From sequence record PQ471515.1: a stretch of 64,000 bases of DNA. One strand, 5' to 3'. Below the pieces are notes generated by a model. The model saw only the letters and a list, made by a program, of their open reading frames with translations. It was not told where the DNA came from and searched no databases. A program made the position numbers and the translations under genes. Position 1 is the stretch's first letter. Each line of letters opens with the position of its first letter. Shown one piece after another: positions 22,212-39,079 of this stretch.

Positions 22212-22235
22212 TGCGTAAAAGGATTTAGTACTGAA

Positions 22236-22459: not shown

Positions 22460-22657
22460 ATGCGTATTTTAACTCAAGAAGAGCACAACCACACACTCAT
22501 ATCCAACATGGCATATATTCTACATATGTCACATATCCGTGGTATGGCATATAAGCGTGAATTGGTTATGAAACTTTTCATAGGAACTAACTATCAAGAA
22601 AAGTATATCGAACTATACTTACAAGAATTACGAAGGGACATAAAAGGAAGACGATGA
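22460..22657 (+). CDS. family B paralog
   Basis: FIGTNYQE. Confidence 0.9.
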   Translation: MRILTQEEHNHTLISNMAYILHMSHIRGMAYKRELVMKLFIGTNYQEKYIELYLQELRRDIKGRR

Positions 22658-22854
22658 AAATGCGTATTTTAAATAAAGAAGATTATCAAGAACTGTTACG
22701 TAAAAACATGGTAAAGATTTATAACACAGACACAAACTTAGAACGAATTGAGTTATACCTTTTGATTACATTGGGAACAAGCTATCAGGGAAGATGGGTG
22801 ATTCAATATATGGATGCATTGAAAAATGAAATATTATCCACGAGGAAACAATGA
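22654..22854 (+). CDS. family B paralog
   Basis: TLGTSYQG. Confidence 0.9.
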   Translation: MKMRILNKEDYQELLRKNMVKIYNTDTNLERIELYLLITLGTSYQGRWVIQYMDALKNEILSTRKQ

Positions 22855-23060
22855 AAACTATAACACGAACCCAATCATACGGTCTTATCTTGAGATACAT
22901 GGACTTAATGTTGGATATCAGAAAAGACCTTCCTAAAACTGCAATTGAAGTTGCAAGAGCAGAGATCCGCATGTTGGCTGTACTGAACACAAACCATCAG
23001 GAAGAGTATGTTGACGATTGGATTCGATTTTTAATAGAAGATATTAAGAGGAAACTATGA
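22851..23060 (+). CDS. family B paralog
   Basis: VLNTNHQE. Confidence 0.9.
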   Translation: MKTITRTQSYGLILRYMDLMLDIRKDLPKTAIEVARAEIRMLAVLNTNHQEEYVDDWIRFLIEDIKRKL

Positions 23061-23269
23061 TTTTTTTAACACCAGAAGAATATAAGATACGTTTTGTTTC
23101 TGTCCAGAATAAAATCTTAATTATATACAATTCAAATGCAGACCTTAACTTATCAAGGGTATTAGAAAAAGATTTACTTATGGGTGCATTTTTGGATACA
23201 GACTTTCAGGTGTATTATGTAGGGGAATACTTAATTGCACTCCAGAATTACATTAAGAGTAAACTATGA
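23057..23269 (+). CDS. family B paralog
   Basis: FLDTDFQV. Confidence 0.9.
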   Translation: MIFLTPEEYKIRFVSVQNKILIIYNSNADLNLSRVLEKDLLMGAFLDTDFQVYYVGEYLIALQNYIKSKL

Positions 23270-23478
23270 ATAGCATTAACTCAAATCTATATGCCGAACG
23301 CGTCGCTGCAAGACAACTTGAAATTCTCATAGTATATGAAGAGACTGATGATTTGAACTTAGCATTAGTATTGGAAAATGATATACTATTGGGTGCATTC
23401 CTCGGCACAGATTATCAGGAGCACTTCTTGAATGAGTATATAATTGCACTCCAGAAATACATTAAGAGCAAACTATGA
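23266..23478 (+). CDS. family B paralog
   Basis: FLGTDYQE. Confidence 0.9.
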   Translation: MNSINSNLYAERVAARQLEILIVYEETDDLNLALVLENDILLGAFLGTDYQEHFLNEYIIALQKYIKSKL

Positions 23479-23693
23479 AACATTTAAGTAATTACGAGAA
23501 GAATAAAATTATCGTTGCTGCAATAAACAAATATTTTACACTTCCTCACACAGAAGGTTTATGTGTAAGGGAACACAGGATAAACACCACCGATATACGC
23601 ATGATGGCTGTACTGGGGACGAACTTTCAGGAAGAGTATGTTGTTGCACACATAGTTGCCCTCACTGATTTAATAAGGGACAAATGCAAATGA
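23475..23693 (+). CDS. family B paralog
   Basis: VLGTNFQE. Confidence 0.9.
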   Translation: MKHLSNYEKNKIIVAAINKYFTLPHTEGLCVREHRINTTDIRMMAVLGTNFQEEYVVAHIVALTDLIRDKCK

Positions 23694-23908
23694 AAGACAT
23701 AAACACTCAAGAATATCTTAAACGATTAGAACAAGGGAAGAACTTTAGACTTCAAGTTTACGATGATGAATCACTAACATCCAATGAAAAGTATGTTATA
23801 CTAACAGACTCAACATTAATACCATTTGTAGGAACAAACTATCAGGAGGTTATGGTAGACAACCACATCACGGCCTTAAAATGTCATGTCAGGGATTTAG
23901 GTAAATGA
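23684..23908 (+). CDS. family B paralog
   Basis: FVGTNYQE. Confidence 0.9.
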   Translation: MQMKDINTQEYLKRLEQGKNFRLQVYDDESLTSNEKYVILTDSTLIPFVGTNYQEVMVDNHITALKCHVRDLGK

Positions 23909-24162
23909 AACACTTAACTGATGATGAATTTGAAACTATAATTCGTAAACTAACCCCCATCACAAGGATAGTCTACGGTGACCCCAGCCTTACATGGAAC
24001 CAAATGCGAGCTAAAGTTAATGAGCTATGGTTGCTGTACTTTATGGGGACTCAATATCAAGATAAGTTTTGCACAGAATATATCGAACAATTAACGAATG
24101 TTATACAGGATAAACTAGATGATTATTTGCTCACAAAACATGAAGACTTTATCAGGAGTTGA
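23905..24162 (+). CDS. family B paralog
   Basis: FMGTQYQD. Confidence 0.9.
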   Translation: MKHLTDDEFETIIRKLTPITRIVYGDPSLTWNQMRAKVNELWLLYFMGTQYQDKFCTEYIEQLTNVIQDKLDDYLLTKHEDFIRS

Positions 24163-24391
24163 GTATCAAACTGCCCTATTCTCTTTAATCCATACCCTTA
24201 GAAAAAACAATGCCTTACATGGTGCACCTGAAGTGGATGTTATCAACGGTGAACTTTATCTTATGAAATTCATTGGAACAAACTATCAAGATCTGTTCAT
24301 TCAACGATACTTATCAGCATTAAGAAACCAAATCCAATATAAAACCATCAAGGCCAAAAAAGAATGGAATAAACAATGCGACACAGACTAA
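24140..24391 (+). CDS. family B paralog
   Basis: FIGTNYQD; start at MKTLSG. Confidence 0.85.
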   Translation: MKTLSGVEYQTALFSLIHTLRKNNALHGAPEVDVINGELYLMKFIGTNYQDLFIQRYLSALRNQIQYKTIKAKKEWNKQCDTD

Positions 24392-24627
24392 ATCACAAAA
24401 TGTATTGTAAACTATTACAGACACTGGCACAGAAACACTATGACACGGTATCTGGAATATTACCCTATGATATCATGCGTTTACTTCACTGTGAGGCCGA
24501 GATGCTTGTACTGATGACTGGCACAGATAAAAACGCAATTGCCAAATCAATAGATATGTTCATCGAAGCACAATGTCAACACATTAGAACCGAGATATGG
24601 AGGCGAGAGAATGATAACCCTAAATGA
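24376..24627 (+). CDS. family B paralog (divergent)
   Basis: MTGTDKNA. Confidence 0.8.
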   Translation: MRHRLNHKMYCKLLQTLAQKHYDTVSGILPYDIMRLLHCEAEMLVLMTGTDKNAIAKSIDMFIEAQCQHIRTEIWRRENDNPK

Positions 24628-24826
24628 GTATCAGTATCATTGGAGGTTACAAGCTATAAGAAGGAAAGTTGTTAGTATTTCTTTAGACAAGTCTATTGCA
24701 CAAGAGGACAAATGTGTTATAATAGCTGAAATGAAGTTGGGTGCTTTCGTAGGAACAAACTATCAAAACATCTACACTGACGTATTGTTAAGTGCCTTAC
24801 GTAACAAGGTGATATCAAAAGAATGA
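24611..24826 (+). CDS. family B paralog
   Basis: FVGTNYQN. Confidence 0.9.
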   Translation: MITLNEYQYHWRLQAIRRKVVSISLDKSIAQEDKCVIIAEMKLGAFVGTNYQNIYTDVLLSALRNKVISKE

Positions 24827-25041
24827 GAAAATTACAAGGCTTTGAATACATCAGACTCCTGAAAACATGTGCCAACAGAAGAGTAAAGATTCAATCTGAT
24901 AAGAGCATCCCTGCCAACCTAAAACATGCAATGATAGCTGAACTCTATGCAGGGGCACTCATAGGGACAAACTATCAACAAATGTATATAGACATGTGGG
25001 TTGATGCATTAGTCAAGGAGATCCAAAGTAAATGCAAATGA
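24823..25041 (+). CDS. family B paralog
   Basis: LIGTNYQQ. Confidence 0.9.
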   Translation: MRKLQGFEYIRLLKTCANRRVKIQSDKSIPANLKHAMIAELYAGALIGTNYQQMYIDMWVDALVKEIQSKCK

Positions 25042-25250
25042 TTAATTTAAGTAAAGATGAATATTATGATCGTCTTGCAAAAACTTATCCAGCACGTAAC
25101 GCCGTTTATAATAGTAACATTATTGAACGCTCAAAGAAGTTGATTGTAGTGAATGAGATTAAGATGCTTTCAGTCTTAGGAACAAACTATCAAGAGAATG
25201 CTGTACTGTTGTTAATTGATGCCCTCCAGAGAGAGATACAAAGTAAATGA
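25032..25250 (+). CDS. family B paralog
   Basis: VLGTNYQE. Confidence 0.9.
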   Translation: MQMINLSKDEYYDRLAKTYPARNAVYNSNIIERSKKLIVVNEIKMLSVLGTNYQENAVLLLIDALQREIQSK

Positions 25251-25483
25251 TTAATTTATCTTTCCATGAATATCAAAAACGTTTAAATGCATCAAGGGAT
25301 ATAAGGATTCAAATCTTCAATAACAAAAAATTGAAACCTGACACCAGAAGAATCAAAATAATAGAAGCAGAGTTATGCAACTTCCTGGGGACGAACCATC
25401 AGGAAGGTAAGATAAAAAACTATCTTAGAGAACTAATGAATTGTATCGAAAATAAATGCGATGCTTTGGAGAATAAAAAATGA
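25247..25483 (+). CDS. family B paralog
   Basis: FLGTNHQE. Confidence 0.9.
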   Translation: MINLSFHEYQKRLNASRDIRIQIFNNKKLKPDTRRIKIIEAELCNFLGTNHQEGKIKNYLRELMNCIENKCDALENKK

Positions 25484-25737
25484 TCAATTTAAGTAAAGAT
25501 GAATATACCGAGCGTATGACAAAAATCTCACCTAAACGTAATGCAATCTATTACAGCCAAGAAATTCCACACAGTAAGAAGATGATTATGTATCGTGAGT
25601 TAAAGATGGGTATGTTCTTAGGAACAAACTATCAAGAACCAGAAGTAAATCGCTTAATAAATGAATTACTCATGGAAATCAGAGGTAAGCTGTACTTTCA
25701 TCAAATGACCCAGCCACTGAGGTGTACTAAGAAATGA
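25480..25737 (+). CDS. family B paralog
   Basis: FLGTNYQE. Confidence 0.9.
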   Translation: MINLSKDEYTERMTKISPKRNAIYYSQEIPHSKKMIMYRELKMGMFLGTNYQEPEVNRLINELLMEIRGKLYFHQMTQPLRCTKK

Positions 25738-25949
25738 TCAACATCACATTGCAAGAAAGATTCATCCGAATCAACTATGCAATTACCAAATTAGATGATA
25801 CTATAGGCAACCAAAGTTTACCGTTCAAAACAAGAATGATATTAGAGTGCGAAGCCAAGTTAGGTGTACTGTTAGGGACGCAACACCAACAACGATATGT
25901 GGAAATCTGGATTGATCTTTTAACCCAAAATGCACATGAGAGAATGTAA
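25734..25949 (+). CDS. family B paralog
   Basis: LLGTQHQQ. Confidence 0.9.
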   Translation: MINITLQERFIRINYAITKLDDTIGNQSLPFKTRMILECEAKLGVLLGTQHQQRYVEIWIDLLTQNAHERM

Positions 25950-26180
25950 ATGCAAAAGGAAATGATATACTTAACACATGATGAATTTCAAGAGAAGATG
26001 TTAAAAGCCAATAACATTACTCTTAAGTTCGTTCCAAATCAATCAATATATGAAATGTCTGCGAATGTATTGTTTCAGAAGCTACCATACGTTCTTGGAA
26101 CTGATAAACAAGAATTTATGGTTCAAAATATGATTGAGCATCTTGCAATGAGTATTATGGAAAAAGTAAATGCAAAATGA
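25950..26180 (+). CDS. family B paralog
   Basis: VLGTDKQE. Confidence 0.9.
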   Translation: MQKEMIYLTHDEFQEKMLKANNITLKFVPNQSIYEMSANVLFQKLPYVLGTDKQEFMVQNMIEHLAMSIMEKVNAK

Positions 26181-26430
26181 AATGATATACTTAACCTATA
26201 ATGAATACGTCGAGAGATTAGTTCGTGCCAAGAGATATACCAATAAACGTCCAATTGACCTAAACCAAACCCCAGCAGAAAGGAGTGCAGAAGTATTATT
26301 CCAATCACTACCATATCTTCTGGGAACTGATAGACAAGAGGAATATGTTGCACGTATGATTAGATATCTTAAAATCACTATTAAGGAAAAAGTAAATGCA
26401 AATGCAAATGAAATACTTAACAGACGATGA
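26170..26430 (+). CDS. family B paralog
   Basis: LLGTDRQE. Confidence 0.9.
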   Translation: MQNEMIYLTYNEYVERLVRAKRYTNKRPIDLNQTPAERSAEVLFQSLPYLLGTDRQEEYVARMIRYLKITIKEKVNANANEILNRR

Positions 26431-26653
26431 GTTAAAAGAACGATTAATTAAATCCAGAAAACTTACAAATCAACTTCCAAACGACACAAACAAGTCACAT
26501 GCCGAAAGGAGTGCAGAAGTTTTATACATTCAACTCCTGTACTTTCTTGGAACTGACAGACAAGAGTATTACATTGAAAGTATGCTTCGATATCTTAAAT
26601 TTTCTATAAAGGAAAAGGTACATGCTCAAGAATTTAAAAATCCTAACAGTTAA
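26396..26653 (+). CDS. family B paralog
   Basis: FLGTDRQE. Confidence 0.9.
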   Translation: MQMQMKYLTDDELKERLIKSRKLTNQLPNDTNKSHAERSAEVLYIQLLYFLGTDRQEYYIESMLRYLKFSIKEKVHAQEFKNPNS

Positions 26654-26864
26654 TGAATATCATAAGATTGTAATGAAAACTAATAGTGCAATTTCTAAAA
26701 AATCAAACCCAAAGTACATACTGGAACACACATTTGAAGAACGTCAATTAGCTTTAGTTGAAGCAAAACTTCTTGCACTCCTAGGAACAAACTATCAGGA
26801 AGAATACATCAGAAAACTAATATACCTTTTAACTAAACACATCAGGAAAAGAAAAAAAGCATGA
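26622..26864 (+). CDS. family B paralog
   Basis: LLGTNYQE. Confidence 0.9.
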   Translation: MLKNLKILTVNEYHKIVMKTNSAISKKSNPKYILEHTFEERQLALVEAKLLALLGTNYQEEYIRKLIYLLTKHIRKRKKA

Positions 26865-27091
26865 AGCACTTGACAGATGATGAACATGGGCTTATAGTAA
26901 TGGATGTAATCAACATCGAATACAAAAAGTTGATACGCTACCGTTGTTATGAAGATAAGCAACTCGTTCTAGAAGAACAGAAGTTGTTTCGACTCTTAAA
27001 CACAAACTACCAAGCACAATACGAAGAATCGTATATGTACCTTTTGGCGAGGAAAGCAAAAAGAGATTATGAAAATTTTAAGCCACAGTGA
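26861..27091 (+). CDS. family B paralog
   Basis: LLNTNYQA. Confidence 0.9.
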   Translation: MKHLTDDEHGLIVMDVINIEYKKLIRYRCYEDKQLVLEEQKLFRLLNTNYQAQYEESYMYLLARKAKRDYENFKPQ

Positions 27092-27284
27092 ACAAACAGA
27101 ATTGTTAATCTTTAATACAAGTAAATTCTTAAACATAACATTGTCTGATATAGATGATGATGAAAAAGAGTTACTTAGAGCAGATTTAAGAGTTCTTTTA
27201 TATATTGGAACTAACTTCCAAGAGCAATTCGTTGAGGACTACATCGATGAACTTAAAGAATCTGTACTGAGAACATGCAAATGA
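27069..27284 (+). CDS. family B paralog
   Basis: YIGTNFQE. Confidence 0.9.
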   Translation: MKILSHSEQTELLIFNTSKFLNITLSDIDDDEKELLRADLRVLLYIGTNFQEQFVEDYIDELKESVLRTCK

Positions 27285-27517
27285 AAATCCTTTCACCAAG
27301 TGAATACCACGAACTATTAAGTAGTTTAATTCTAAAATTGTATATAGCAAAGACCACAGATTTACCTGATGAAGAAAAAAATATTCTAATGAGTGAAATC
27401 TATGTTAATTCTACCCTAGGGACTAACTATCAAGAATGTAATATTAATGATTACATCAAAGAACTAAAAAGGTTTATCCAATGCAAATGCGAATCATTAC
27501 CGAAACAGAATACCTAA
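27275..27517 (+). CDS. family B paralog
   Basis: TLGTNYQE. Confidence 0.9.
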   Translation: MQMKILSPSEYHELLSSLILKLYIAKTTDLPDEEKNILMSEIYVNSTLGTNYQECNINDYIKELKRFIQCKCESLPKQNT

Positions 27518-27723
27518 CAATCTTAAATGGACTGTTTTTGAAGTTATTTGCCATTAACACATCAAAACTACCAGATACTGATAAAATTATTAAGTTAAAT
27601 GAAATCTATGTTCAAGCTACACTGGGAACTAACTATCAAGAAGCCAATGTGTATAATTACATTAATACACTCAAAAGGGTAATAAAATTAAAATGCACAA
27701 ACAGCCAATACACAAACCCCTAG
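27481..27723 (+). CDS. family B paralog
   Basis: TLGTNYQE. Confidence 0.9.
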   Translation: MQMRIITETEYLTILNGLFLKLFAINTSKLPDTDKIIKLNEIYVQATLGTNYQEANVYNYINTLKRVIKLKCTNSQYTNP

Positions 27724-27923
27724 GAACAGCAGAATACATTGAACTAATGGCTGCAAACTTCTCATCCTTTAAGAAACTGATGCAAGAATCAAATAATGAT
27801 TTAGAATATCATATCAAAAGTTCAGATTTAAGATTACTACTCACTCTAGGAACAGACAGTCAGTACAAATTCGTACAGGAGCATATTAGAGCACTTTTAA
27901 ATGGCATCAGGGATAAACTATGA
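27693..27923 (+). CDS. family B paralog
   Basis: TLGTDSQY. Confidence 0.85.
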   Translation: MHKQPIHKPLGTAEYIELMAANFSSFKKLMQESNNDLEYHIKSSDLRLLLTLGTDSQYKFVQEHIRALLNGIRDKL

Positions 27924-28135
27924 AGGAAATATCAAATCAAGAGTACTTGGCACTGTTCAGAAAAAATAGTCAAGAATTTCTGAATATTGATACAAGGACT
28001 GATATAAGTGAACTTCAGAAAAATCTTTTGCGTTCAGAGATGATAGTACTGACACTCTTAGGAACACAGCATCAAGAGAGAACTGTTAATTCACACATAG
28101 GTATTCTTATACAGATTGTACAGGAAAAGATATGA
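27920..28135 (+). CDS. family B paralog
   Basis: LLGTQHQE. Confidence 0.9.
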   Translation: MKEISNQEYLALFRKNSQEFLNIDTRTDISELQKNLLRSEMIVLTLLGTQHQERTVNSHIGILIQIVQEKI

Positions 28136-28948: not shown

Positions 28949-29290
28949 ATGAAAACTAATATACAACTCAACGTATACAGTTCAGAAGAACATACATATA
29001 TCAAATGCAGTCTATGTAAAGATGTAATGGACTACAAAGGTAAGCCATTCACAATTACTTATGATTCTGATGTTAATGATTTATATATATCATTTCTTAA
29101 TTACGAAAATAAAATATACAAGCACGTTGATATTAAAGATTTAAGTACTTTATCACCAGAGGAATACTTTCAGGAATCGTTAGTATGGGATTTGGAGTTT
29201 CCTATGCCATTAGTACATAAAATGGTAGTCCAAATGAAAGAAGCTAAACCGGAGTTTAACGGTTATGAAGAACACACAATTGAGTATTAA
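28949..29290 (+). CDS. family C, short type
   Basis: LSPEEYFQESLVWD. Confidence 0.9.
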   Translation: MKTNIQLNVYSSEEHTYIKCSLCKDVMDYKGKPFTITYDSDVNDLYISFLNYENKIYKHVDIKDLSTLSPEEYFQESLVWDLEFPMPLVHKMVVQMKEAKPEFNGYEEHTIEY

Positions 29291-29521
29291 ATGAAAAGAT
29301 TATCATACGAAGATTACACCAATCTTATCAGGACTTTACAACCACAAATACAACAAATAAATTCTCTTCCTATACCCCAAGAAGAACGTGCAGTACTGAA
29401 AGATGAGTTAATTTTAAAATGCACAGTAGGAACAAACTATCAAGCTGATAGTGTTCGATATTTAATTTGGGGTTTAATGAGTATAATAGAGAACAAAGCA
29501 GTTGACAGTACTCTATTGTAG
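29291..29521 (+). CDS. family B paralog
   Basis: TVGTNYQA. Confidence 0.85.
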   Translation: MKRLSYEDYTNLIRTLQPQIQQINSLPIPQEERAVLKDELILKCTVGTNYQADSVRYLIWGLMSIIENKAVDSTLL

Positions 29522-29530
29522 TGCTATAGT
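29502..29530 (+). promoter_or_regulatory. sigma70-type promoter at the left edge of the ACT-depleted block
   Basis: TTGACA-17-TATAGT with extended -10 TG. Confidence 0.75.
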
Positions 29531-29561
29531 ACATGAACGTTAATCATTAGGGTAGAAAATT

Positions 29562-29807
29562 ATGTTGAATTTTTTAAATTTCCTTATCGTCTTGTGTATT
29601 GTTCTTGGGATTGCACCATTTGTATTGTATTTCATGGATTCAGATGAAATGCAGAAGATGAATTGTACAAGGACAGGACAGAGTAGAGTAGAGACGATTC
29701 TTATGCCTGTTACGGTTATTGTTAACAACATGCCCATTACCAACATGGTCCCTACCCTAACGACAACGTACCAGTACTCTTGTACAGACGGAGAGAGGTG
29801 GAGATAA
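29562..29807 (+). CDS. membrane-anchored hypothetical protein
   Basis: N-terminal TM helix, two Cys in the C-terminal domain. Confidence 0.8.
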   Translation: MLNFLNFLIVLCIVLGIAPFVLYFMDSDEMQKMNCTRTGQSRVETILMPVTVIVNNMPITNMVPTLTTTYQYSCTDGERWR

Positions 29808-30130
29808 TGCGTAAGTTCAATTGTATTGTACGTAAGAATTCTTGTTACATTGTAGTAGCTGATTTTAATACGGGTTCTGGGTTGAAGATATTTGAGTACA
29901 GAAAATGCAATAATTCTTTTCATTGGAAATTAGGTGCAAGAAAAACAAATACAATTTCAGTACCGAATTTATGTTCTATCTCTGAAGAAGAAGAGTTTCA
30001 GTACTTGTTAGTACATGATGATTCTTTAGGATTTACATTTGTAGATATGAAGGAAGTACAAAAGCAGATGATTGCACATTGTCATCTTCCAAAGAATTTT
30101 GTTCAACGCGTATGTGAATTCTACATATAA
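29807..30130 (+). CDS. family C, short type
   Basis: ISEEEEFQYLLVHD; start at MRKFNC. Confidence 0.85.
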   Translation: MRKFNCIVRKNSCYIVVADFNTGSGLKIFEYRKCNNSFHWKLGARKTNTISVPNLCSISEEEEFQYLLVHDDSLGFTFVDMKEVQKQMIAHCHLPKNFVQRVCEFYI

Positions 30131-30139
30131 GAGAAGAAT

Positions 30140-30451
30140 ATGAAATTTAATATAGCAAAAACATCGAGTATATGTATTTTTGGTTATGCAGAAGAGTTAG
30201 GTGATATTGACATTCTTTTGTACAAAAAGGATGGTGTTATGCATTTCAAGTACCAGGATGAAGAGGCAGACAATTATCTTTTACCTAATTTAGTACAAAT
30301 GCAGGAAGAGGAATTATTCCAGTACAGCTTAATATACGACATTGATATTTGCACGATGCCAGTATTAATTAATATACAAAAAGTTATGCTCGATATGTAT
30401 GATAAGCTAATACAAGGTATGTCAGGGAGGATCATTGAAATCGATATATAA
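30140..30451 (+). CDS. family C, short type
   Basis: MQEEELFQYSLIYD. Confidence 0.9.
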   Translation: MKFNIAKTSSICIFGYAEELGDIDILLYKKDGVMHFKYQDEEADNYLLPNLVQMQEEELFQYSLIYDIDICTMPVLINIQKVMLDMYDKLIQGMSGRIIEIDI

Positions 30452-30647
30452 GAATTTACCTAATGAATATATGTTGAAGTACAAAGAGTTTATTAAAGAT
30501 GTATATGTAGATCCTTTCAATATCAAATTTGCAGAGTTCGAAGTATCATTTTATCTAGGGACAATAGTACAGGACCAATACGTTGATAATCTAATAAGGT
30601 GTTTGAAAAAGGAGATACAATGCAGACCCAAAGGTATAAAAAGGTAG
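30435..30647 (+). CDS. family B paralog (divergent)
   Basis: YLGTIVQD. Confidence 0.8.
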   Translation: MKSIYKNLPNEYMLKYKEFIKDVYVDPFNIKFAEFEVSFYLGTIVQDQYVDNLIRCLKKEIQCRPKGIKR

Positions 30648-30892
30648 ATTCTTTATTGTACGCTTCAAAGTACAGGGATTTTTGTTTACGCGGTTCTGGA
30701 GGGGGAGAGGAAGATTTCGCTCTGAGATTATCAGAATTCAATATGTTATTTTATCTTGGTACAAAAGAACAAGAAGATACAGTACAGAAATTTCTCAATC
30801 ACCTTGTACAAAAAATTAATATGCAAATTTTGATGCTTGAGTTACAGAATGAGATAAATGAATATGAATCCAGAAATAGTTCAGGATCTTAA
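30620..30892 (+). CDS. family B paralog (divergent)
   Basis: YLGTKEQE; start at MQTQRY. Confidence 0.8.
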   Translation: MQTQRYKKVDSLLYASKYRDFCLRGSGGGEEDFALRLSEFNMLFYLGTKEQEDTVQKFLNHLVQKINMQILMLELQNEINEYESRNSSGS

Positions 30893-31253
30893 AAAAGTAA
30901 TATTTCTTTTGAATACAAGAAGCTCTTTATATAAGGAGTTCCAAGATAAGGATGGTTCTTTTAAACCATTATGTATAGAATTCAATGATTTAATTACAGA
31001 TGCATTGTTTGAATTTTCAGAGAAATATCAAGATACAGTGTTCGGTGTTAAGAATGCTATTAATCCAAGGACAGGTACAAGGAAGATAACGTTATCTCAT
31101 TTTGCATTTGACAATAAAGATTTTTTCAGTTATAATCCCAGTACATCTTTATATTTTATTCCAAAAGGAGACAAGAATAGTCCTATTCATTACGGATGGA
31201 TTATATCTTATGTAGTGCAAGGGAAGGAGTATCCTATTAAATGGCACGATTAG
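30858..31253 (+). CDS. hypothetical protein
   Basis: 131 aa ORF in operon. Confidence 0.8.
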   Translation: MNMNPEIVQDLKKVIFLLNTRSSLYKEFQDKDGSFKPLCIEFNDLITDALFEFSEKYQDTVFGVKNAINPRTGTRKITLSHFAFDNKDFFSYNPSTSLYFIPKGDKNSPIHYGWIISYVVQGKEYPIKWHD

Positions 31254-31392
31254 GGAGTGAAGATTATAATATGAATATATTATTAAGAAATATTAATGCA
31301 GATTATTGTGTATGGGTTAAGAATAGAGATATGATGTATTATGATTTTTATTTAGATTGTGCCATTAAGCGTTTTTTAAGAGAAGAACATTA

Positions 31393-31575
31393 ATGAAAGA
31401 CGTTAATACAAAAGCAATAAATGATTTAAATGATTCTTTATTAGTAAGTATCAAGATGTATTACAATATACATTTAAAGGGTGGTATAGATAATTACAAT
31501 TATTATCTTTCATTAGTTACAATAGAACATTTAAATTATCTAGATCATTTATTACATCCAAATCCTCCATATTAA
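31393..31575 (+). CDS. small hypothetical protein
   Basis: ORF in operon. Confidence 0.6.
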   Translation: MKDVNTKAINDLNDSLLVSIKMYYNIHLKGGIDNYNYYLSLVTIEHLNYLDHLLHPNPPY

Positions 31576-31586
31576 GGAATACCAAT

Positions 31587-31916
31587 ATGAATAAAATTAT
31601 TTTAGCTCTAACATTTATTTTATCAATGTTCGCTAATACCGTACAGGCCGCTGCACATGATGTATATCAATTTGATTGCAGATTACAAAACAATGACAAA
31701 ATCGACATTTATTTGCACAATACAGAAGTTCCGTATTTGCAGATTGAGTCCACAAAGTACATTTATTTTGGTGAGAATTCAGTACAGGAATTTTTATTCA
31801 AGCACACATCAGAAGATGTGATTATTTCTTTGCAGTTCGTTGATAGTTCATTAACGCTGATGCATTTCAAAAATGAAAAAGGTTTAGTTACCGTGCTTAA
31901 ATGCACAAGGGTATAA
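31587..31916 (+). CDS. hypothetical exported protein
   Basis: Signal-peptide-like N-term, AAGGA RBS. Confidence 0.85.
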   Translation: MNKIILALTFILSMFANTVQAAAHDVYQFDCRLQNNDKIDIYLHNTEVPYLQIESTKYIYFGENSVQEFLFKHTSEDVIISLQFVDSSLTLMHFKNEKGLVTVLKCTRV

Positions 31917-31917
31917 T

Positions 31918-32478
31918 ATGAATGATATTGAGTTATTGGTACATAAGATTTGCACAATATCGTTAGTGCTGAACAATGCGAATACAGTACAGAGTTCCCT
32001 TTTAAGAATTAATAAAGTTGGGAGTAGTTTATATTTGGAAGTAAAAGCTGGTTTTGCAGGTCAGTACAATGATAAAATCAAAGAAGAAGTTAAGGGAAGT
32101 GAAGATGCTTTCATTGAGGTTTGTGCAACAGTTGGTTCAAATCCAATTTCAGTATCACCTTTAATGCGAAATGAAAATTCAGAATTTGATTCCAGTTTTG
32201 AAGGTTATTTGTGGTATAATTATGGTGATGATTATTTTATATATCAGAATTCCAAAACGGATTACAGTGAAGAAGGTATAAAATTCATTGATCCTTACAA
32301 TGAAGCAGAAGTATTTCAGACATCCCTAATATACAATACAAATCAAATGAAGTATCTTATGTTGTTTAGTACAATGCATTTGAATCCATTGAAAGATAAT
32401 TTAAAATTTTTCATTCGTTTAGAATTAGTTGATATTGCTTATGATCTTTTAATGCAAGGATATAGTTATGAAGTATAA
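31918..32478 (+). CDS. family C, long type
   Basis: NEAEVFQTSLIYN; paralog of 32555. Confidence 0.9.
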   Translation: MNDIELLVHKICTISLVLNNANTVQSSLLRINKVGSSLYLEVKAGFAGQYNDKIKEEVKGSEDAFIEVCATVGSNPISVSPLMRNENSEFDSSFEGYLWYNYGDDYFIYQNSKTDYSEEGIKFIDPYNEAEVFQTSLIYNTNQMKYLMLFSTMHLNPLKDNLKFFIRLELVDIAYDLLMQGYSYEV

Positions 32479-32548
32479 AATGCTGTATACAAAAGATATG
32501 ATTTATGTTGAATTAGAAGTCAATGACGATGTATCCATCAATAGGTAA
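32468..32548 (+). pseudogene. 26 aa stub of the 33051-type gene
   Basis: MKYKMLYTKDMIYVELE then early stop; shares a 36-bp junction repeat with 33032-33067. Confidence 0.65.
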
Positions 32549-32554
32549 TAATAT

Positions 32555-33061
32555 ATGAATGAGATAGAATTATTAGCACACAAGATTAGTACAGTAATGC
32601 TTATGCTCAAGAATAATCATTCTATGCATAAGTACATTTTTATAGGTGATTTACGCATAGAAGATAGATATGATAAATTATCGTTTATGTTTAAAGATGA
32701 AAGTAATGCAAAAGTTTGTTTTGCAGCATTTACCCAAGGCAATCCAGAACAAGCATCTCCTGTTATATACGAAAATAGTGAAGGGTATTTGTGGGTCAAC
32801 ACAAACGATTATTTCTTTTATGTTTTGAAACAAGATGATGAAGTAGAAGCACGAATTGATTTAATTGATATTAGTTCAGATTGTAGTGCTGAATTATTTC
32901 AGAAATCGTTATTATACAGTCCTCGTCAAATACATTATCTAAAGTTATTCAGTTCATTGTACGCGAATCCTTTAATTAAGGGTTTTAAATTTTATATCAA
33001 AATTCCGCACCTTTCAAACGTTTATGATATGTTAATGCAAGGATATAGTTATGAAGTATAA
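32555..33061 (+). CDS. family C, long type
   Basis: SAELFQKSLLYS. Confidence 0.9.
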   Translation: MNEIELLAHKISTVMLMLKNNHSMHKYIFIGDLRIEDRYDKLSFMFKDESNAKVCFAAFTQGNPEQASPVIYENSEGYLWVNTNDYFFYVLKQDDEVEARIDLIDISSDCSAELFQKSLLYSPRQIHYLKLFSSLYANPLIKGFKFYIKIPHLSNVYDMLMQGYSYEV

Positions 33062-33362
33062 AATGCTTTATACATTAACATTAATATATGTAGAATTAGA
33101 ATCCGATTCAGATGCATGGAATTTGGTTAAAGAGGTCGATACCAATCAATGGTACATGGCAAATTTAGACGCACAGGTTGTTACGGATTATTTTATAGAT
33201 TTTAATACATTATCTGAAGAAGAATTTTTCCAAATGCAATTGGTGGTTGACATGTACGGACATGACATGGTAACATTAAGAAATATACAGAAAGTAGTTA
33301 ATGAATTCCAAAGCAAGAAAGATTATGAGGTAGGAGCGTATTATGACATCGACGTACAGTGA
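33051..33362 (+). CDS. family C, short type
   Basis: LSEEEFFQMQLVVD. Confidence 0.9.
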   Translation: MKYKMLYTLTLIYVELESDSDAWNLVKEVDTNQWYMANLDAQVVTDYFIDFNTLSEEEFFQMQLVVDMYGHDMVTLRNIQKVVNEFQSKKDYEVGAYYDIDVQ

Positions 33363-33382
33363 AAGCAATGAGTACAATAGTT

Positions 33383-33709
33383 ATGAAGTATAAAATGCTT
33401 TATACATTATCAGGGATATATGTAGAATTAGAACCCGATTATCCAGATGGATGGAATTTTATTAAACGCTCCGAAAGAAATACATGGCACATGGCACATT
33501 TGGATAATGACGTAATATTAGACAATTTTGTGGATTTTAATACATTATCAGAAGAAGAATTCTTCCAAATGCAATGTGTGCTTGACACAAAAGGATTTGA
33601 TGTGCTATTATTAAAGAATATACAAAAAGCTGTTAACGAATTAATATCCAATGACGAGTTAGGCAAAGTGAGGCTGTTCCATGATCTCGAAGTACCGTAC
33701 CAGCAATGA
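33383..33709 (+). CDS. family C, short type
   Basis: LSEEEFFQMQCVLD; start at MKYKML. Confidence 0.9.
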   Translation: MKYKMLYTLSGIYVELEPDYPDGWNFIKRSERNTWHMAHLDNDVILDNFVDFNTLSEEEFFQMQCVLDTKGFDVLLLKNIQKAVNELISNDELGKVRLFHDLEVPYQQ

Positions 33710-34250
33710 AATTCAGTACACCTACGCTAATGCAATCCTAATGGGACAAAAGTTAGCTTGTATTGTTGCAGCCTTATATAATGTACAGAAAGCAGCACAT
33801 AATAAAAAACCATATACAAGAATCATTAACGCATTCATGGGGTTTAAACCATCTGATTTTGATTCACATATTGCGTGCACAAGTTATTTTGACAAACGAT
33901 TCAATACACCTGATACCCAAAATGCCCGTAGTGTTATTAGTCTTTTACAGTTTAATCCAACACCAGTTATATCAAAGAATGATTTGGATTACACATGGTA
34001 CAATTCAAATCAAGATTCATTTTATTCTAATGATCAATCGATTGAATATAATAAAATTAAATCAGAGGAAGCATTTTTTCAGGAATCATTATTTACACAT
34101 GAACGTTCTTTGTTTTATAGTGTTATGTTGAGTACAGTATACAATAGTCCATTACACAAGAATAACAAAATTAATTTCAGTTTTTGTGCTTATGCGATTG
34201 ATGGTGTTTATGAGTGCTTAATGGAGGTATTGAGTTATGAAGCTGAATAA
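33681..34250 (+). CDS. family C, long type
   Basis: KSEEAFFQESLFTH. Confidence 0.85.
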   Translation: MISKYRTSNEIQYTYANAILMGQKLACIVAALYNVQKAAHNKKPYTRIINAFMGFKPSDFDSHIACTSYFDKRFNTPDTQNARSVISLLQFNPTPVISKNDLDYTWYNSNQDSFYSNDQSIEYNKIKSEEAFFQESLFTHERSLFYSVMLSTVYNSPLHKNNKINFSFCAYAIDGVYECLMEVLSYEAE

Positions 34251-34578
34251 TACATTTGATATTAAGAAGTTAAGAGAATGGTTTTATAGTATTGAAATTG
34301 AAGCCATTCCTTATCATAGATATGAACAAAGTGATTTACAAAGTATTGATATCAGAGAGTTGTACAAATATTATCAGAGTGCATTAGAGATGCATAAGTT
34401 ATTTTTGAGTACAAATTTCATTTTGAATTACAATTTTGAGGAATTTAATAATTATAATTTAGTACAGAAATATGTAGTAGCAAAGTACATGTACAATCAA
34501 GGTATCAAAGGTTGCCTCGAATTCAATACCGTTCTTATTTTAGTTGAGGTAATTTTATGCACCGCATGTCTGATTTAG
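34237..34578 (+). CDS. hypothetical protein
   Basis: GGAGG RBS, in operon. Confidence 0.8.
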   Translation: MKLNNTFDIKKLREWFYSIEIEAIPYHRYEQSDLQSIDIRELYKYYQSALEMHKLFLSTNFILNYNFEEFNNYNLVQKYVVAKYMYNQGIKGCLEFNTVLILVEVILCTACLI

Positions 34579-35054
34579 AGTTCAGTTTAGATGCAGCCTT
34601 TAAATTTGTTCACAAAATAGAAACAATATATCGTACATTATGTGCAATAACATCAGTATCAAAAGAGTTTGATGTTGGTGAAAGGTATCAGGTGTGGAAT
34701 AATTCATTTTATAATAAAGAACATTCTGCGACGGCATTTTATATTTTAGCATTTAATCCCAGCAATTGTTACCCAGAGAAGCATGAACGTTATCCAAATG
34801 ACGACATGTGGTTTGAGTACAAAGAAGATGCTGATATGTCGTCAATTGTAGTTCCTGATGATTTTAATGCACAAGATTTAACAGAAGAGTGGTGGTTCCA
34901 GCAGAATTTAGTACATGATGATATTGATTTATTTTTCTATATTGCATTTAAAATGCTTTATCACAACAATATAGTTAAAGAAAGTTTATCGTTTTCATGT
35001 CTATATATTGATGATTTGTACAATGAAATTCAAATAAACATGCCTGTATCGTAA
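34566..35054 (+). CDS. family C, long type
   Basis: LTEEWWFQQNLVHD. Confidence 0.9.
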   Translation: MSDLEFSLDAAFKFVHKIETIYRTLCAITSVSKEFDVGERYQVWNNSFYNKEHSATAFYILAFNPSNCYPEKHERYPNDDMWFEYKEDADMSSIVVPDDFNAQDLTEEWWFQQNLVHDDIDLFFYIAFKMLYHNNIVKESLSFSCLYIDDLYNEIQINMPVS

Positions 35055-35070
35055 GATATGGGCTTTTTTT
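35042..35070 (+). terminator. intrinsic terminator
   Basis: GCCTGTATC-GTAA-GATATGGGC and T7. Confidence 0.75.
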
Positions 35071-35072
35071 GT

Positions 35073-35101
35073 TTGACACGAGTACAAATGCATGGTACAA
35101 T
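35073..35101 (+). promoter_or_regulatory. sigma70-type promoter
   Basis: TTGACA-17-TACAAT with extended -10. Confidence 0.8.
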
Positions 35102-35127
35102 GTGTAATCATTTTTAAGGAGATACCT

Positions 35128-35703
35128 ATGGAAAATTTTAAAATACCAGATGATTTCAATTCAGTACAAGAGATTGTACACAAGGTTCATTATATTTTTA
35201 ATGAATTAATTATTGCCAATTCATCCGGTATGCAAATTGAGTTAAAGGATATTGATAGAGAAGAAGTTTTTTTGGGTTCCCCAAATTCAATCATTCCTTT
35301 TTATGGACAAGATCGTTTATGGTTCATGAGAGATACCCCAATTGACAAATACAAAATACAAAACAAATCAGAGTTTTATTATATTTTTGATTGTCTTAAT
35401 ATTACATTACAAACACAAGATATAAATGCAATGAGTGCCATGAGTGCAGAGGATTATTTTCAGTACAGTACAGTGTATAGTCCAGAAGAAATCTTTGTTG
35501 TTATGCTCGTTGCAAAATTGAGTACAGTTAATTTTGGGACGTACCCAAATAAATCATTCAAGATTATTATTCCTGCATTCGTTGATCTTTATGATTTCAT
35601 TGTGCACAAGAAAGAAAGTACAGTGTACGATATGTATCGTTCAAATATCAGTTTATTTGCATCAAGTGCAGTAAATGCAGTGATTACAGGGGAATTAAAA
35701 TGA
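35128..35703 (+). CDS. family C, long type
   Basis: MSAEDYFQYSTVYS; AAGGAG RBS. Confidence 0.9.
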   Translation: MENFKIPDDFNSVQEIVHKVHYIFNELIIANSSGMQIELKDIDREEVFLGSPNSIIPFYGQDRLWFMRDTPIDKYKIQNKSEFYYIFDCLNITLQTQDINAMSAMSAEDYFQYSTVYSPEEIFVVMLVAKLSTVNFGTYPNKSFKIIIPAFVDLYDFIVHKKESTVYDMYRSNISLFASSAVNAVITGELK

Positions 35704-36308
35704 ACATAGACCAATTAATGAAGTACAGTACAAATACAATTCCAGTGCTAAGTAAAGCATTAGATGCATTCAATGCTAAGTACCCTGAAGGTTCCGAGTT
35801 AAATATTCCTTTTACCACAGAAGGGATTGTTGATACGTACATTGTAAACATCAGTAGTACAGGTATTGTTTTGAAGCAAAAGTACGGCGAAAGTGAATAT
35901 TATGGATTGAAGCTGGATAATATTTCAGGAGAGAAGACACCTTATGAGTTTTGGGTTCCGAATAACATTGAGTCATGGAAAACAAATATTAATAAGAGAG
36001 ACGAAAGAAATTTACCTCTTGTACAAAATAATGAAAAAAGAATTGACGTATTTTATTATTACAGTACAGCCCAGTTTCCAGAAGAGATTTATTTAAATTC
36101 AGAGGTGCATGAAGATATTGAATCATTTTTCTTTCAGTTATCATTGGTACAGGATATCATGCCTGTGCAAATGTTCAGGGATGAAATAAATTTAGCGAAA
36201 GAGATTTCGGATATGTTACCTGAATTTAGTGTTCTTTATGGTAGTAGAGCTTTACCTGAAAATGTATACAAAGAATTTATTTCCATTGTTAAAGGGTTGA
36301 ATATATAA
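35700..36308 (+). CDS. family C, long type
   Basis: DIESFFFQLSLVQD. Confidence 0.85.
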   Translation: MNIDQLMKYSTNTIPVLSKALDAFNAKYPEGSELNIPFTTEGIVDTYIVNISSTGIVLKQKYGESEYYGLKLDNISGEKTPYEFWVPNNIESWKTNINKRDERNLPLVQNNEKRIDVFYYYSTAQFPEEIYLNSEVHEDIESFFFQLSLVQDIMPVQMFRDEINLAKEISDMLPEFSVLYGSRALPENVYKEFISIVKGLNI

Positions 36309-36309
36309 T

Positions 36310-36504
36310 ATGACCGCCTATGATATCAAACAAAGGCATACGAAGTTTGATTTGTTCACATACCAATTCCACAATGATATAGTGAATTTTAACATCAATG
36401 CGTCCTTGCATCCTACATCACAAGATGATTTTGACAACAGAGTGCTTAACATCGTGGTGCTTTTGTGTTATAATCATTTCAGTGAATATTTTAACGCCAA
36501 ATGA
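36310..36504 (+). CDS. small hypothetical protein
   Basis: ORF in operon. Confidence 0.65.
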   Translation: MTAYDIKQRHTKFDLFTYQFHNDIVNFNINASLHPTSQDDFDNRVLNIVVLLCYNHFSEYFNAK

Positions 36505-36520
36505 GGCAGATGAGGCACAC

Positions 36521-37039
36521 ATGTATCAGGCCAAGTACAATACATCATATGAGTATGGGCACAACATTTTGAAGATCATCAAAGCGTTAGAGGGTGGATT
36601 GCTTAGTCATAAGTACACCAGAGTAGGTGACAATTGGTTCAGAAATGATGATGAGTTCAGAAGTCATAAGATTGTTTACAGCAATAATTACAGTGCCAAT
36701 TACCTTCAGGATGTTGCTATGTGCTTCGAATACGTGTTACAGTTCAGGGGTTCCATCAGTCCTGAGCTAAGAGAACACATGTACATTCGATACCTACCAA
36801 TGCTTAAGGATGAGAAAACAATATTCAATTCAGTACATCAAAGAGTACGAGAGAGATCATTCAGGGATATTTTAGAAGATGAAGCTGCCTATTTTCAGCA
36901 ATCATTGATTGATGCTCCTGATGTGTTACAGATGCAGAATTTGTATAATGTATTAGATGCGAACATCGATACGGATATCTTTTTTTCCTTAAGTGATTAT
37001 GAAACATTTTTGGAAGATTTAAAGGAAATAGGATTATGA
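36521..37039 (+). CDS. family C, long type
   Basis: EDEAAYFQQSLID; start at MYQAKY. Confidence 0.85.
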   Translation: MYQAKYNTSYEYGHNILKIIKALEGGLLSHKYTRVGDNWFRNDDEFRSHKIVYSNNYSANYLQDVAMCFEYVLQFRGSISPELREHMYIRYLPMLKDEKTIFNSVHQRVRERSFRDILEDEAAYFQQSLIDAPDVLQMQNLYNVLDANIDTDIFFSLSDYETFLEDLKEIGL

Positions 37040-37380
37040 GTAGATTTTCAGTTTATATAGTAAACGTCAGTAAAGATGGTAGTTTAATTGAATTTGATGT
37101 AGTTGATGACAATGATAATTCATATTGTATTAAGGTACAGGACAATGATGTACAGTTCAGTACAAGGACAAATTTTGAGAATCCAGTCCAAGTTCCGAAT
37201 TTCATAGAAGATGAAGCTGCACGATTCCAATACGAAACGGCCTTTGATAATTTAGCGATGCATATTATTATGCAACAGAGTTTAGTTCAATTGCTTCAGG
37301 TATTCAGACAAAATATATATGTACATGAAGTGTCGATTAATGGTATTCAAAGTTCCGTTTTGTTCGGTACAAATATGTAA
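37036..37380 (+). CDS. family C, short type
   Basis: EDEAARFQYETAFD. Confidence 0.85.
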   Translation: MSRFSVYIVNVSKDGSLIEFDVVDDNDNSYCIKVQDNDVQFSTRTNFENPVQVPNFIEDEAARFQYETAFDNLAMHIIMQQSLVQLLQVFRQNIYVHEVSINGIQSSVLFGTNM

Positions 37381-37390
37381 GGAAAGTACA

Positions 37391-37945
37391 ATGAGTTCAA
37401 TGAGTTTATTAGATACATTAGAAAAAGACAGAAGTGCCATTAAGAGATTAAAAAATCTTGTCCAGAACATTGCGAACAACGCTGAGAAGTTCAGTGACAA
37501 TCTTAGTATAGGTGATATAACCAGTACAGGAATAAAATCCCTGAAGTCAGATTTATTAATTCATAAGGAAGATAAATTATTATTTGTATTGAGTTCAGAT
37601 TTAATGGTTGCAAGTAATGGTTTCAATTCGATATCAACACAAGATGGTAGTACAGGATTATATCTATCACAGGGTGTCCAGACGAACGATCAGAAGTGTT
37701 TTAGTTCAGGAGTACAGAATCCCTTTAAGTTCAGTACAGAACAAGCTACAGAGCTTTTAGATGCATCAGAAGAGATGTTATTTCAGTACAAAACGGTTCA
37801 TACAGATTTTGAATTACGATGCATGTACGCTGTTAAGCATTATGTTCAGGAGTTCGAGGATTTAAGTTATCTTTTAGTTCGAACGAATACAAAGAACATT
37901 GGTGCATTAGAAGATTACATTTCAAAAGTTGTTAAAGGGTGCTGA
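37391..37945 (+). CDS. family C, long type
   Basis: ASEEMLFQYKTVHT; start at MSSMSL. Confidence 0.85.
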   Translation: MSSMSLLDTLEKDRSAIKRLKNLVQNIANNAEKFSDNLSIGDITSTGIKSLKSDLLIHKEDKLLFVLSSDLMVASNGFNSISTQDGSTGLYLSQGVQTNDQKCFSSGVQNPFKFSTEQATELLDASEEMLFQYKTVHTDFELRCMYAVKHYVQEFEDLSYLLVRTNTKNIGALEDYISKVVKGC

Positions 37946-38106
37946 TGAAAGAATTATTTGAAGAACAGTTCGATACATATGTGGATAATATTCTTTATTC
38001 TAGTCGTGCTAGTCAACGAGGAAATCGTGCTTACAACATAGATTACCTATTAACGGTGCTGAGTTCACAGTACACCTACGCTGTGCAGAGGACATATTAT
38101 GGATAA
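37945..38106 (+). CDS. small hypothetical protein, 53 aa
   Basis: TGATG overlap; fills the operon gap. Confidence 0.55.
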   Translation: MKELFEEQFDTYVDNILYSSRASQRGNRAYNIDYLLTVLSSQYTYAVQRTYYG

Positions 38107-38302
38107 TTTTAGAGATGTTGCAAAGGAGAAGTTCAAGTGCAGTTTAGATTACGGTTTAAATGATTTTCTTACATGCACAATGTACAGGAATGATGATTAT
38201 GAGCAATCCGTAATTTCGTTGCACAGATATTTCGAAATAATTTATGCAAGATATCTTAGAAGGTTAGATGGGATAGGGGATTGGAATTATGATTACGTTT
38301 GA
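38099..38302 (+). CDS. small hypothetical protein
   Basis: GAGG RBS. Confidence 0.7.
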   Translation: MDNFRDVAKEKFKCSLDYGLNDFLTCTMYRNDDYEQSVISLHRYFEIIYARYLRRLDGIGDWNYDYV

Positions 38303-38504
38303 AGAGCCGGAAGTAGTATATTGCTATAGTGTGAAAGGTTTTGAATACATGATGGATTCGATTTTGAAGGATACATATTTGGTTCAGATTGCAGTTGCAG
38401 ATAATGCAGTACAACGAGTATTGAATATATACGAGAGGACGAGTCGAAGGCTTTGTGCAATGAAAAGGATTGAAGAAATCAAGCTTTCTAGGCTGAATAA
38501 ATAG
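38289..38504 (+). CDS. small hypothetical protein
   Basis: Overlapping ORF in operon. Confidence 0.7.
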   Translation: MITFEEPEVVYCYSVKGFEYMMDSILKDTYLVQIAVADNAVQRVLNIYERTSRRLCAMKRIEEIKLSRLNK

Positions 38505-38520
38505 AGACGTTTCATTTTCA

Positions 38521-38660
38521 CAGGCCGCTGGGGGGGGGTCAAAAAAATTTTCGCTGAAAAACATGTTAAGGTATATGTTTAATATAAAGTTTTAAAATGT
38601 GTTCACAGAGTACAGTTCATGTTTCCTGAAACAAAAAATACCCCGCCGCGAACGTTCTCC
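38521..38660. other. GC-rich intergenic element with a G9 run
   Basis: CAGGCCGCT-G9-TC-A7-TTTTCGCT at 38521 and AAAAAATACCCCGCCGCG at about 38633-38650. Confidence 0.6.
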
Positions 38661-38701
38661 TTATATTGGAGTTTACCTTATTAATTACAGTAGAGATTAA
38701 G

Positions 38702-39079
38702 ATGCAAATAAAATATAATGAATTTTGTATAGGGACATGGATGTACACGGGTGAGTTGATTACGTGTTGTAATTTGTACAAAGGTGATTTAAACTACACA
38801 AGGGGCAAGGTTATAAAGTTCTGGAATTCACAATTTTATTTAATGGATCTTGGTACTGGATTTAGTTGTAAAGCAACCGATATGCTGGACTATACCTTAA
38901 TGGATGATGCTGCACTATTTCAGGAGTCATTAGTATTTGACAAGAAGTACATCTGTACATTAGAAGAGATTGTTGAAATCCAGCGTAGAATTAAATGCAT
39001 TCACAGGGAATGTATAGATAAATGGTGTAAAACTGGTGAAACTAATTTTAGTAATCATTTCAATCTAGGGGAAGAGTGA
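38702..39079 (+). CDS. family C, short type (CNLxKGD subfamily)
   Basis: MDDAALFQESLVFD. Confidence 0.9.
   Translation: MQIKYNEFCIGTWMYTGELITCCNLYKGDLNYTRGKVIKFWNSQFYLMDLGTGFSCKATDMLDYTLMDDAALFQESLVFDKKYICTLEEIVEIQRRIKCIHRECIDKWCKTGETNFSNHFNLGEE

Follow-up and report, generated by a model that had tools for sequence, protein, structure and literature searches.

The stretch analysed here, which we call the window, comprises bases 1-64000 (64 kb) of the genome of Escherichia phage Turkey3 (PQ471515.1; 361,208 bp), a Rak2-like jumbo myovirus belonging to the Asteriusvirus group, with 121Q and PBECO4 among its relatives. The + strand carries nearly all genes of the window, and on this strand the trinucleotide ACT, after two occurrences at 29776 and 30003, is not found again until 38793, a gap of 8790 nt. 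The tract thus delimited (30006..38792, + strand, 8787 nt) contains no ACT at all. Over this length 131 ACT are expected from mononucleotide composition, 60 from the dinucleotides of the region itself and 194 from the frequency in the rest of the window. An initial annotation of this DNA had described the desert and the two last ACT preceding it, with an expectation of about 100 or more; our counts bear this out, the expected number being 131-194. It had also spoken of about 25 genes, a figure that did not stand, the tract in fact containing 21 annotated coding sequences (CDS) in full and two in part.

All trinucleotides and tetranucleotides were scanned on the whole 361-kb genome (the 64-kb window and the other 297 kb), and a motif desert was scored as the product of gap length and motif frequency. 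The window holds 1212 ACT and its second-longest ACT gap is 310 nt; the longest gap of any other trinucleotide there, that of the rare CGG, reaches 4804 nt, and none equals the ACT desert. Genome-wide, ACT occurs 7339 times (median, 20 per kb), the second-longest gap is 475 nt and the poorest 1-kb window outside the tract holds 6 ACT. With a value of 178.6 the ACT tract has the highest score of the genome, the next unrelated case among all 3-mers and 4-mers being at 68. Chance or low complexity as the cause is ruled out by the gap, the expectation and the genome-wide scan.

The depletion concerns one strand only. Indeed AGT, which represents ACT on the opposite strand, stays abundant inside the tract, as had been claimed: it occurs 228 times, at a slightly raised density (26 versus 21 per kb), and no AGT desert exists anywhere in the 361-kb genome. 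Avoidance of a double-stranded DNA (dsDNA) restriction site is thereby ruled out. None of the four NACT and none of the four ACTN tetramers occurs in the tract; what is avoided is thus exactly the trinucleotide ACT. The 825 non-coding nucleotides of the tract are likewise devoid of ACT (about 17 expected), in agreement with the claim that the desert extends over the three frames and intergenic DNA. GC content and skews do not change across the tract or beyond it up to about 46 kb, whereas ACT is found again from 38793 on. Since only ACT and ACT-containing words are missing and the composition continues past the tract, a compositional island or a recent horizontal transfer is also ruled out.

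The way in which ACT is avoided was analysed on the 21 annotated CDS lying wholly inside the tract. Threonine is encoded there by ACA, ACC and ACG, never by ACT. Tyrosine, histidine, asparagine and aspartate are never written NAC before a codon starting with T (0/145), versus 133 of 462 before a codon starting with another base, and leucine is never written CTN after a codon ending in A (0/65), versus 63 of 177 after other codons. Paralogous genes show the same purge, and the example put forward in the initial annotation is correct: GAT TTA AGT ACT TTA TCA outside the tract becomes GAT TTT AAT ACA TTA TC. inside. As this avoidance is independent of the reading frame, includes non-coding DNA and proceeds by context-dependent synonymous choice, what is selected is a nucleic acid rather than a protein or the usage of tRNAs. 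Turkey3 and 121Q are separated by 1331 substitutions over 6755 aligned tract positions. When these substitutions were reassigned at random within classes defined by codon position and source base, 57.8 ± 7.0 ACT were created (minimum of 35 in 2000 trials), whereas the actual number is 0; every ACT site is therefore individually selected against.

We then compared orthologous regions of related phages. ACT-free tracts are present on the coding strand in 121Q (7511 nt), Sharanji (7649 nt) and the Salmonella Asteriusvirus SD-15_S21 (7212 nt), and in fEgEco12 the tract extends from 29,016 to 37,319, with 97% identity to Turkey3 there. The divergent phage Turkey5 keeps a 4402-nt tract, the genes of which are syntenic homologues with 23-29% amino-acid identity. 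In another genus, Salmonella phage Munch, whose RNA ligase is 60% identical, has an ACT-free stretch of 1955 nt comprising three genes (gap x frequency of 42), and the corresponding stretch of fENko-Kae01 (hereafter Kae01; 24,053-26,008), a Klebsiella aerogenes phage close to Munch, has a single ACT inside. For RaK2, CBB, BF and the Munch group, 40-50 kb were scanned per genome, and what is said of tract-less phages applies to that part. The syntenic early regions of RaK2 (Klebsiella), CBB (Pectobacterium) and BF (Serratia) are without a tract, their longest ACT gaps being 370, 299 and 284 nt, and the positional counterparts of the tract genes in tract-less relatives contain 9-20 ACT each. Two lineages, which infect Escherichia or Salmonella, show the tract, against none of the three others sampled; the gene content of the tract region differs between close relatives. 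The strong strand-specific selection implied by the initial annotation is fully supported by the synonymous choices made according to context, by the persistence of the depletion where nucleotides diverge by 20% and proteins are 23% identical, and by its presence in a second genus. Judging from these sequence comparisons, the tract is old and actively maintained.

The boundaries of the tract follow transcription. At its head stands a sigma-70-type promoter (29502..29530, + strand; TTGACA-17-TATAGT with TG), whose untranscribed spacer holds an AGTACT and hence an ACT at 29510, 27 nt upstream of the presumed start; the depletion begins at the start site. The 121Q orthologue has the same head promoter, with two ACTs in the spacer. 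The 5' part of the transcription unit (29537..30005, + strand) is a sparse zone that retains only the ACT at 29776 and 30003, both within CAGTACT, where 9.5 are expected (P(<=2)=0.004); it spans a small membrane-protein gene (29562-29807) and most of the next one (29807-30130). Similar zones precede the tracts of 121Q and Sharanji, with retained ACTs about 130-250 nt apart, while the tract is preceded by a 717-nt stretch almost free of ACT in Turkey5 and by an ACT gap of 434 nt in Munch.

At the other end, the tract is closed by an intergenic element of 197 nt (38505..38701, + strand) made of a G-run, tCAAAAAAATTTTCGCT (38541-38555) and a C-rich run. The A7T4CGCT core of this element is a single copy in the 361-kb genome and marks the 3' end of each tract that was examined, those of 121Q, Sharanji, Turkey5, Munch and Kae01, in two genera; it is also found in the tract-less CBB and BF. 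In the first gene past the tract (38702..39079, + strand), ACT is back at 38793, 91 nt in, and then resumes its normal density. The first ACT is about 140 nt into the Turkey5 orthologue and, across lineages, 41-140 nt into the next gene, which is the distance expected if the normal ACT frequency resumes at the gene start. The edges initially proposed, the 29502 promoter and the GC-rich intergenic element, are thus confirmed. In sum, ACT is totally absent from one strand, in every frame and under active purifying selection, over a region that coincides with transcription-unit boundaries. We also observed that the closing core, in the form tCAAAAAAATTTYCGCT with its G-run and C-run flanks, occupies the same place in the early-gene arrays of three genera (Asteriusvirus, the Munch group and CBB/BF). 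The element may act as a special promoter, as a regulator site or as an origin; a structured RNA was considered and rejected, with no Rfam match and a fold z-score of 0.45.

The 21 CDS fully inside the tract (30140-38504, + strand) are all of unknown function. A Pfam search of the tract proteins gave nothing at the curated cutoff, the best result being a sub-threshold DUF1803 match (17.8 bits versus 32.2), and PHROGs returned 'unknown function' families only. Only 6 homologue clusters were found among these proteins, and the AlphaFold model of the product of 35700-36308 was unusable (pLDDT of 37.5). A terminator-like hairpin (35042-35063, + strand) is followed by a promoter-like site (35073-35101, + strand; TTGACA-17-TACAAT), from which we deduce that the tract covers at least two transcription units. 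The spacer of this internal site has AGTACA where the head promoter has AGTACT. Other strong promoter-like sites were recognized by sequence match on the + strand at 31108-31136, 33582-33611 and 36446-36474.

The hexamer AGTACT is itself a prominent feature of this genome, with 981 copies versus 122 expected. The longer form CAGTACTG (for example at 1774, 2919 and 4709) occurs 226 times, versus 3.8 expected from base composition or 14 from a second-order Markov model, and altogether (C)AGTACT(G) is over-represented 8-59 times. The palindrome is found whatever the reading frame, and its density is doubled in non-coding DNA. Inside the tract AGTAC is as dense (5.9 per kb) as outside (6.5 per kb), but A follows it in 47 of the 52 inside copies, whereas T does so in 264 of the 358 outside, which confirms the change from AGTACT to AGTACA noticed in the initial annotation. 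The flanking preferences for C and G are unchanged (cAGTACAg). With density and flanks kept, the function of the palindrome is apparently retained inside the tract and only the + strand ACT is given up. AGTACT enrichment is common to RaK2, CBB, BF and Munch; as the first three are enriched without having a tract in the regions scanned, the palindrome and the tract are separable.

The palindrome core equals that of the E. coli SlmA-binding site GTGAGTACTCAC (PMC3020112), and filamentation of cells has been reported on Sharanji infection (PMC11895373). The phage palindrome prefers C at -1, the SlmA-type G being found in just 9% of copies. The palindrome is missing over 5.7 kb of the window (22227-27942), where ACT is present; this segment covers a tandem array of paralogous genes of about 70-80 aa that starts just past the inferred end of the terminal repeat, and the lowest AGT window of the genome (5 per kb at 22251) falls within it.

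We also considered the place of the tract relative to the genome ends. The Sharanji record begins 443 nt from the tract, which was the origin of the idea that the tract could belong to a genome end, and the direct terminal repeat of this phage measures 20.7 kb. In fEgEco12 a direct terminal repeat of 1-20,993 was established by PhageTerm and restriction digests, and in Kae01 the repeat is annotated at 1-19,736. The tract is thus located 4-8 kb past the repeat and not at a genome end. By colinearity with these relatives, the terminal repeat of Turkey3 should correspond to about 1-21 kb of the window. The genome-end, 3'-tail or primase-at-terminus model was dropped in view of the confirmed fEgEco12 termini and the annotated Kae01 repeat, and the same two phages speak against a T5-like pre-early or first-step-transfer region, the tract being outside the direct terminal repeat. 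In CBB the terminal repeat contains no tract. Concerning the inferred repeat of Turkey3, near-identical long early promoters AAAAGTACTTGCAAACTATGTTTAAAGGCGTATAATG at 3031, 3491, 4169, 4732, 5534, 6182 and 6967 recur every 0.5-1 kb over the first ~22 kb. Among its genes, 13675-13929, 13996-14349 and 18020-18601 encode a DksA/TraR zinc finger, a small GNAT acetyltransferase and a protein-kinase-like domain, for which host-takeover functions are plausible.

Taken together, the specificity for the sense strand, the independence of frame, the zero tolerance at each site and the edges at a promoter and an intergenic element suggest that the transcript is the selected molecule. Indeed, the three-gene, 2-kb unit of Munch fits the scale of a messenger RNA (mRNA) and would be trivial for replication. 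The mRNAs of these early operons would be kept free of ACU in the face of an agent recognizing ACU in single-stranded RNA, the simplest candidate being an endoribonuclease of MazF/Kid-like specificity, which the phage would encode or trigger, or which its Escherichia or Salmonella hosts would carry. Ordinary mRNAs, in which ACU occurs every ~50 nt, would be cut, and about 21 fast-evolving accessory proteins would go on being made while the other cellular mRNA is shredded. A precedent exists in engineered ACA-less transcripts, which remain translated when MazF is active. By analogy, the variable gene content of the tract region may be likened to that of accessory or counter-defence loci. We therefore favour, with a confidence that stops somewhat short of even, a set of nuclease-proof early operons exempt from an ACU-specific, ribosome-independent endoribonuclease; the transcript as the selected molecule, the nuclease nature of the agent and its origin are inferred. 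The wider proposal, that Asteriusvirus and Munch-like phages use or regularly face a new pure-ACU endoribonuclease and have evolved a dedicated nuclease-proof regulon, is put forward more tentatively.

To look for such an agent, known cleavage motifs were considered: ^ACA for MazF, U^AC for ChpB, GCU for MqsR, UU^ACU for Kid and UU^ACUCA for MazF-hw. Inside the tract ACA is enriched (264 copies), TAC occurs 197 times and GCT 67 times. Given this abundance, and since every NACT is lost and not TTACT alone, E. coli MazF, ChpB, MqsR and Kid are excluded. The only protein of a sequence-specific RNase type noticed is the PhoH-like protein at record 89978-91417, a PhoH2 with an N-terminal PIN_4 nuclease domain and a PhoH ATPase; being present in all Rak2-like phages, it was rejected as the nuclease that discriminates between them. 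A tRNA-Ser with anticodon ACU (A34; loop CUACUAA; record 295585-295676), next to tRNA-Ser(GCU), tRNA-Ser(UGA) and two tRNA-Thr(UGU), is 100% identical in 18 Asteriusvirus records. Turkey5, the Salmonella SD phages and the Munch group bear the tract but yielded no such tRNA; since the two distributions do not match, the tRNA was rejected as a tract-linked feature. Its role may be to read the numerous AGU codons to which in-frame AGTACT gives rise. As to the source of the agent, a hint of the host comes from the host distribution and from the one ACT left inside the tract of the Klebsiella phage, and a hint of the phage from the constancy of the motif across many hosts, K-12 included.

Several observations weigh against an ACU-specific endoribonuclease. 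We know of no such nuclease, and by Pfam no RNase domain was detected in 20 tract proteins and 29 other window proteins (49 in total). The mycobacterial PhoH2 family is reported to cut AC[A/U][A/U][G/C], hence ACA too, and PhoH2 is kept at 69-80% identity in K64-1, 7t3, CBB and BF, tract-less relatives included. Nine of eleven E. coli endoribonuclease toxins were profiled in a K-12 study and none cleaves ACU; Sharanji grows on K-12 yet keeps a 7649-nt tract, and this speaks against a common host toxin. Over its first 0.5 kb the transcript retains 2-3 ACUs, all in CAGUACU, and the literature on these phages yielded no transcriptome, RNA-end or stability dataset. Finally, exemption from a nuclease gives no reason why these particular genes need immunity. 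The RNA-level model of the initial annotation is therefore retained as the best fit, in view of the transcription-unit edges and the three-gene minimum, the E. coli toxins named above being excluded as the agent.

The initial annotation had also proposed a DNA-level model, in which ACT would be the template triplet of the phage primase or of an enzyme acting on single-stranded DNA (ssDNA), so that the + strand would have to stay unprimed or unmodified. T7- and T4-type primases do read trinucleotides with a cryptic 3' base, and GTACT or AGTACT would then be the full site, which would also explain the genome-wide enrichment of the palindrome in all frames and in non-coding DNA; in the tract, cAGTACAg keeps only the minus-strand copy. 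The phage primase gene is located at record 233025-234080 and has no Pfam match. This model is however weakened by RaK2, CBB and BF, which share the replisome genes and the AGTACT enrichment and are tract-less where scanned, as well as by the 2-kb tract of Munch, which is about the size of one Okazaki fragment, such that a selection site by site is hardly possible. Moreover, the tract is neither at a physical end nor in the terminal repeat, its edges match promoters and an intergenic element rather than a replication landmark, and the mirror-image AGT desert is absent genome-wide; we consider the model unlikely. A regional mutational process without selection, for instance a strand-biased deamination of ACT, would be consistent with ATT and TTT being the most enriched triplets of the tract (416 versus 274 and 381 versus 224, respectively). 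But the change from AGTACT to AGTACA is a T-to-A change at unchanged density, ACT is removed by every available synonymous route according to context, and composition is constant to ~46 kb though ACT resumes at 38793 with sharp edges. As the present data suggest, in addition, that ACT losses are not dominated by one type of mutation, such a process appears extremely improbable.

Two other explanations also place the selection on transcription or RNA. An Alc-like shut-off factor could stop or pause E. coli RNA polymerase at non-template ACT or nascent ACU, the tract genes being the units that must stay transcribed. Its strand and transcription-unit logic is the same as that of the endoribonuclease, and T4 Alc, which causes sequence- and template-dependent termination, is a precedent. 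Nevertheless, ACT abounds elsewhere in the genome, even in strong early operons at 1-22 kb, and these parts also need the host polymerase, and to our knowledge no trinucleotide-specific terminator of the Alc kind exists; this explanation seems to us quite unlikely. ACU could also be edited, modified or bound instead of cleaved, for example off target by a TadA-like deaminase adapted to the phage tRNA-Ser(ACU), or by an ACU-binding translational repressor. The unusual, conserved tRNA fits this possibility, as do the deaminase-fold proteins encoded by Turkey3 (one with a MafB19-type match) and the tRNA-specific adenosine deaminase in the annotation of Sharanji. That this tRNA was not found in the tract-bearing phages named above does not fit, TadA-type enzymes need a tRNA-like hairpin whereas the avoidance observed here is context-free, and weak binding cannot account for zero tolerance. 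For both explanations there is no precedent of a bare triplet being recognized, and we regard an editing or binding activity as very doubtful.

Motif avoidance driven by nucleases is a phenomenon of a known type. T7 has its EcoP15I sites in one orientation and the first-step-transfer DNA of T5 is free of EcoRI sites; the loss is likewise regional or orientation-specific, but these motifs are dsDNA sites of 5-6 bp, whereas that of Turkey3 is a trinucleotide, avoided on one strand only and outside the terminal repeat. The closest likeness to nuclease-proof operons is found in the ACA-less transcripts used with MazF for single-protein production, which are also motif-free in every frame so that the message survives a ribosome-independent endoribonuclease. 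Those transcripts are engineered, and the UUACUCA bias related to MazF-hw is statistical and extends over single genes; in contrast, the tract of these phages is natural, absolute, multi-operon and up to 8.8 kb long, and its triplet is ACU. Kid/PemK, ChpB and MazF-ec are enterobacterial toxins that cut just before AC in motifs of 3-5 nt, from which an ACU-specific member would be a small step, although the motifs of these toxins are not avoided in the tract. T4 RegB is a phage-encoded sequence-specific endoribonuclease (GGAG) that sorts phage messages into sensitive and insensitive ones; it differs in acting mainly on Shine-Dalgarno GGAG and in needing S1, and no operon-wide purge of its motif has been described. 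The ACT-free tract is described nowhere in the literature mentioning Asteriusvirus, and as far as could be found an absolute, strand-specific, operon-delimited trinucleotide desert kept in two phage genera is undescribed.

Other unusual word distributions were observed elsewhere in the genome. Record 147007-158700 shows long + strand gaps for AAAA (5283 nt), TATG, ATGA and CATG; two giant minus-strand genes are located there (147640-153360 and 153510-158426), the coding strand of which lacks TTTT, CATA, TCAT and CATG over kilobases, probably reflecting an unusual, repetitive amino-acid composition. The hexamers ACCACC, CACCAG, CCACCA and CTGGTG are over-represented 4-5 times genome-wide, an excess that may come from ~17 RCC1/HERC1-like repeat genes on the minus strand at record 337-357 kb.

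Stranded scans for k-mer deserts, as performed here, can expose hidden sequence-specific activities, and phage Sharanji on E. coli K-12 offers a direct experimental system for the question. An ACU-specific RNase, should the agent prove to be one, would represent a new mechanism of phage-host conflict and provide a new RNA-cutting tool of 3-nt specificity; the tract would then be the first natural nuclease-proof regulon at the scale of operons, the counterpart of engineered single-protein production. Among the hundreds of unknown genes of a jumbo phage, those acting under such a regime are marked by the tract, and sequence alone is enough to see it.

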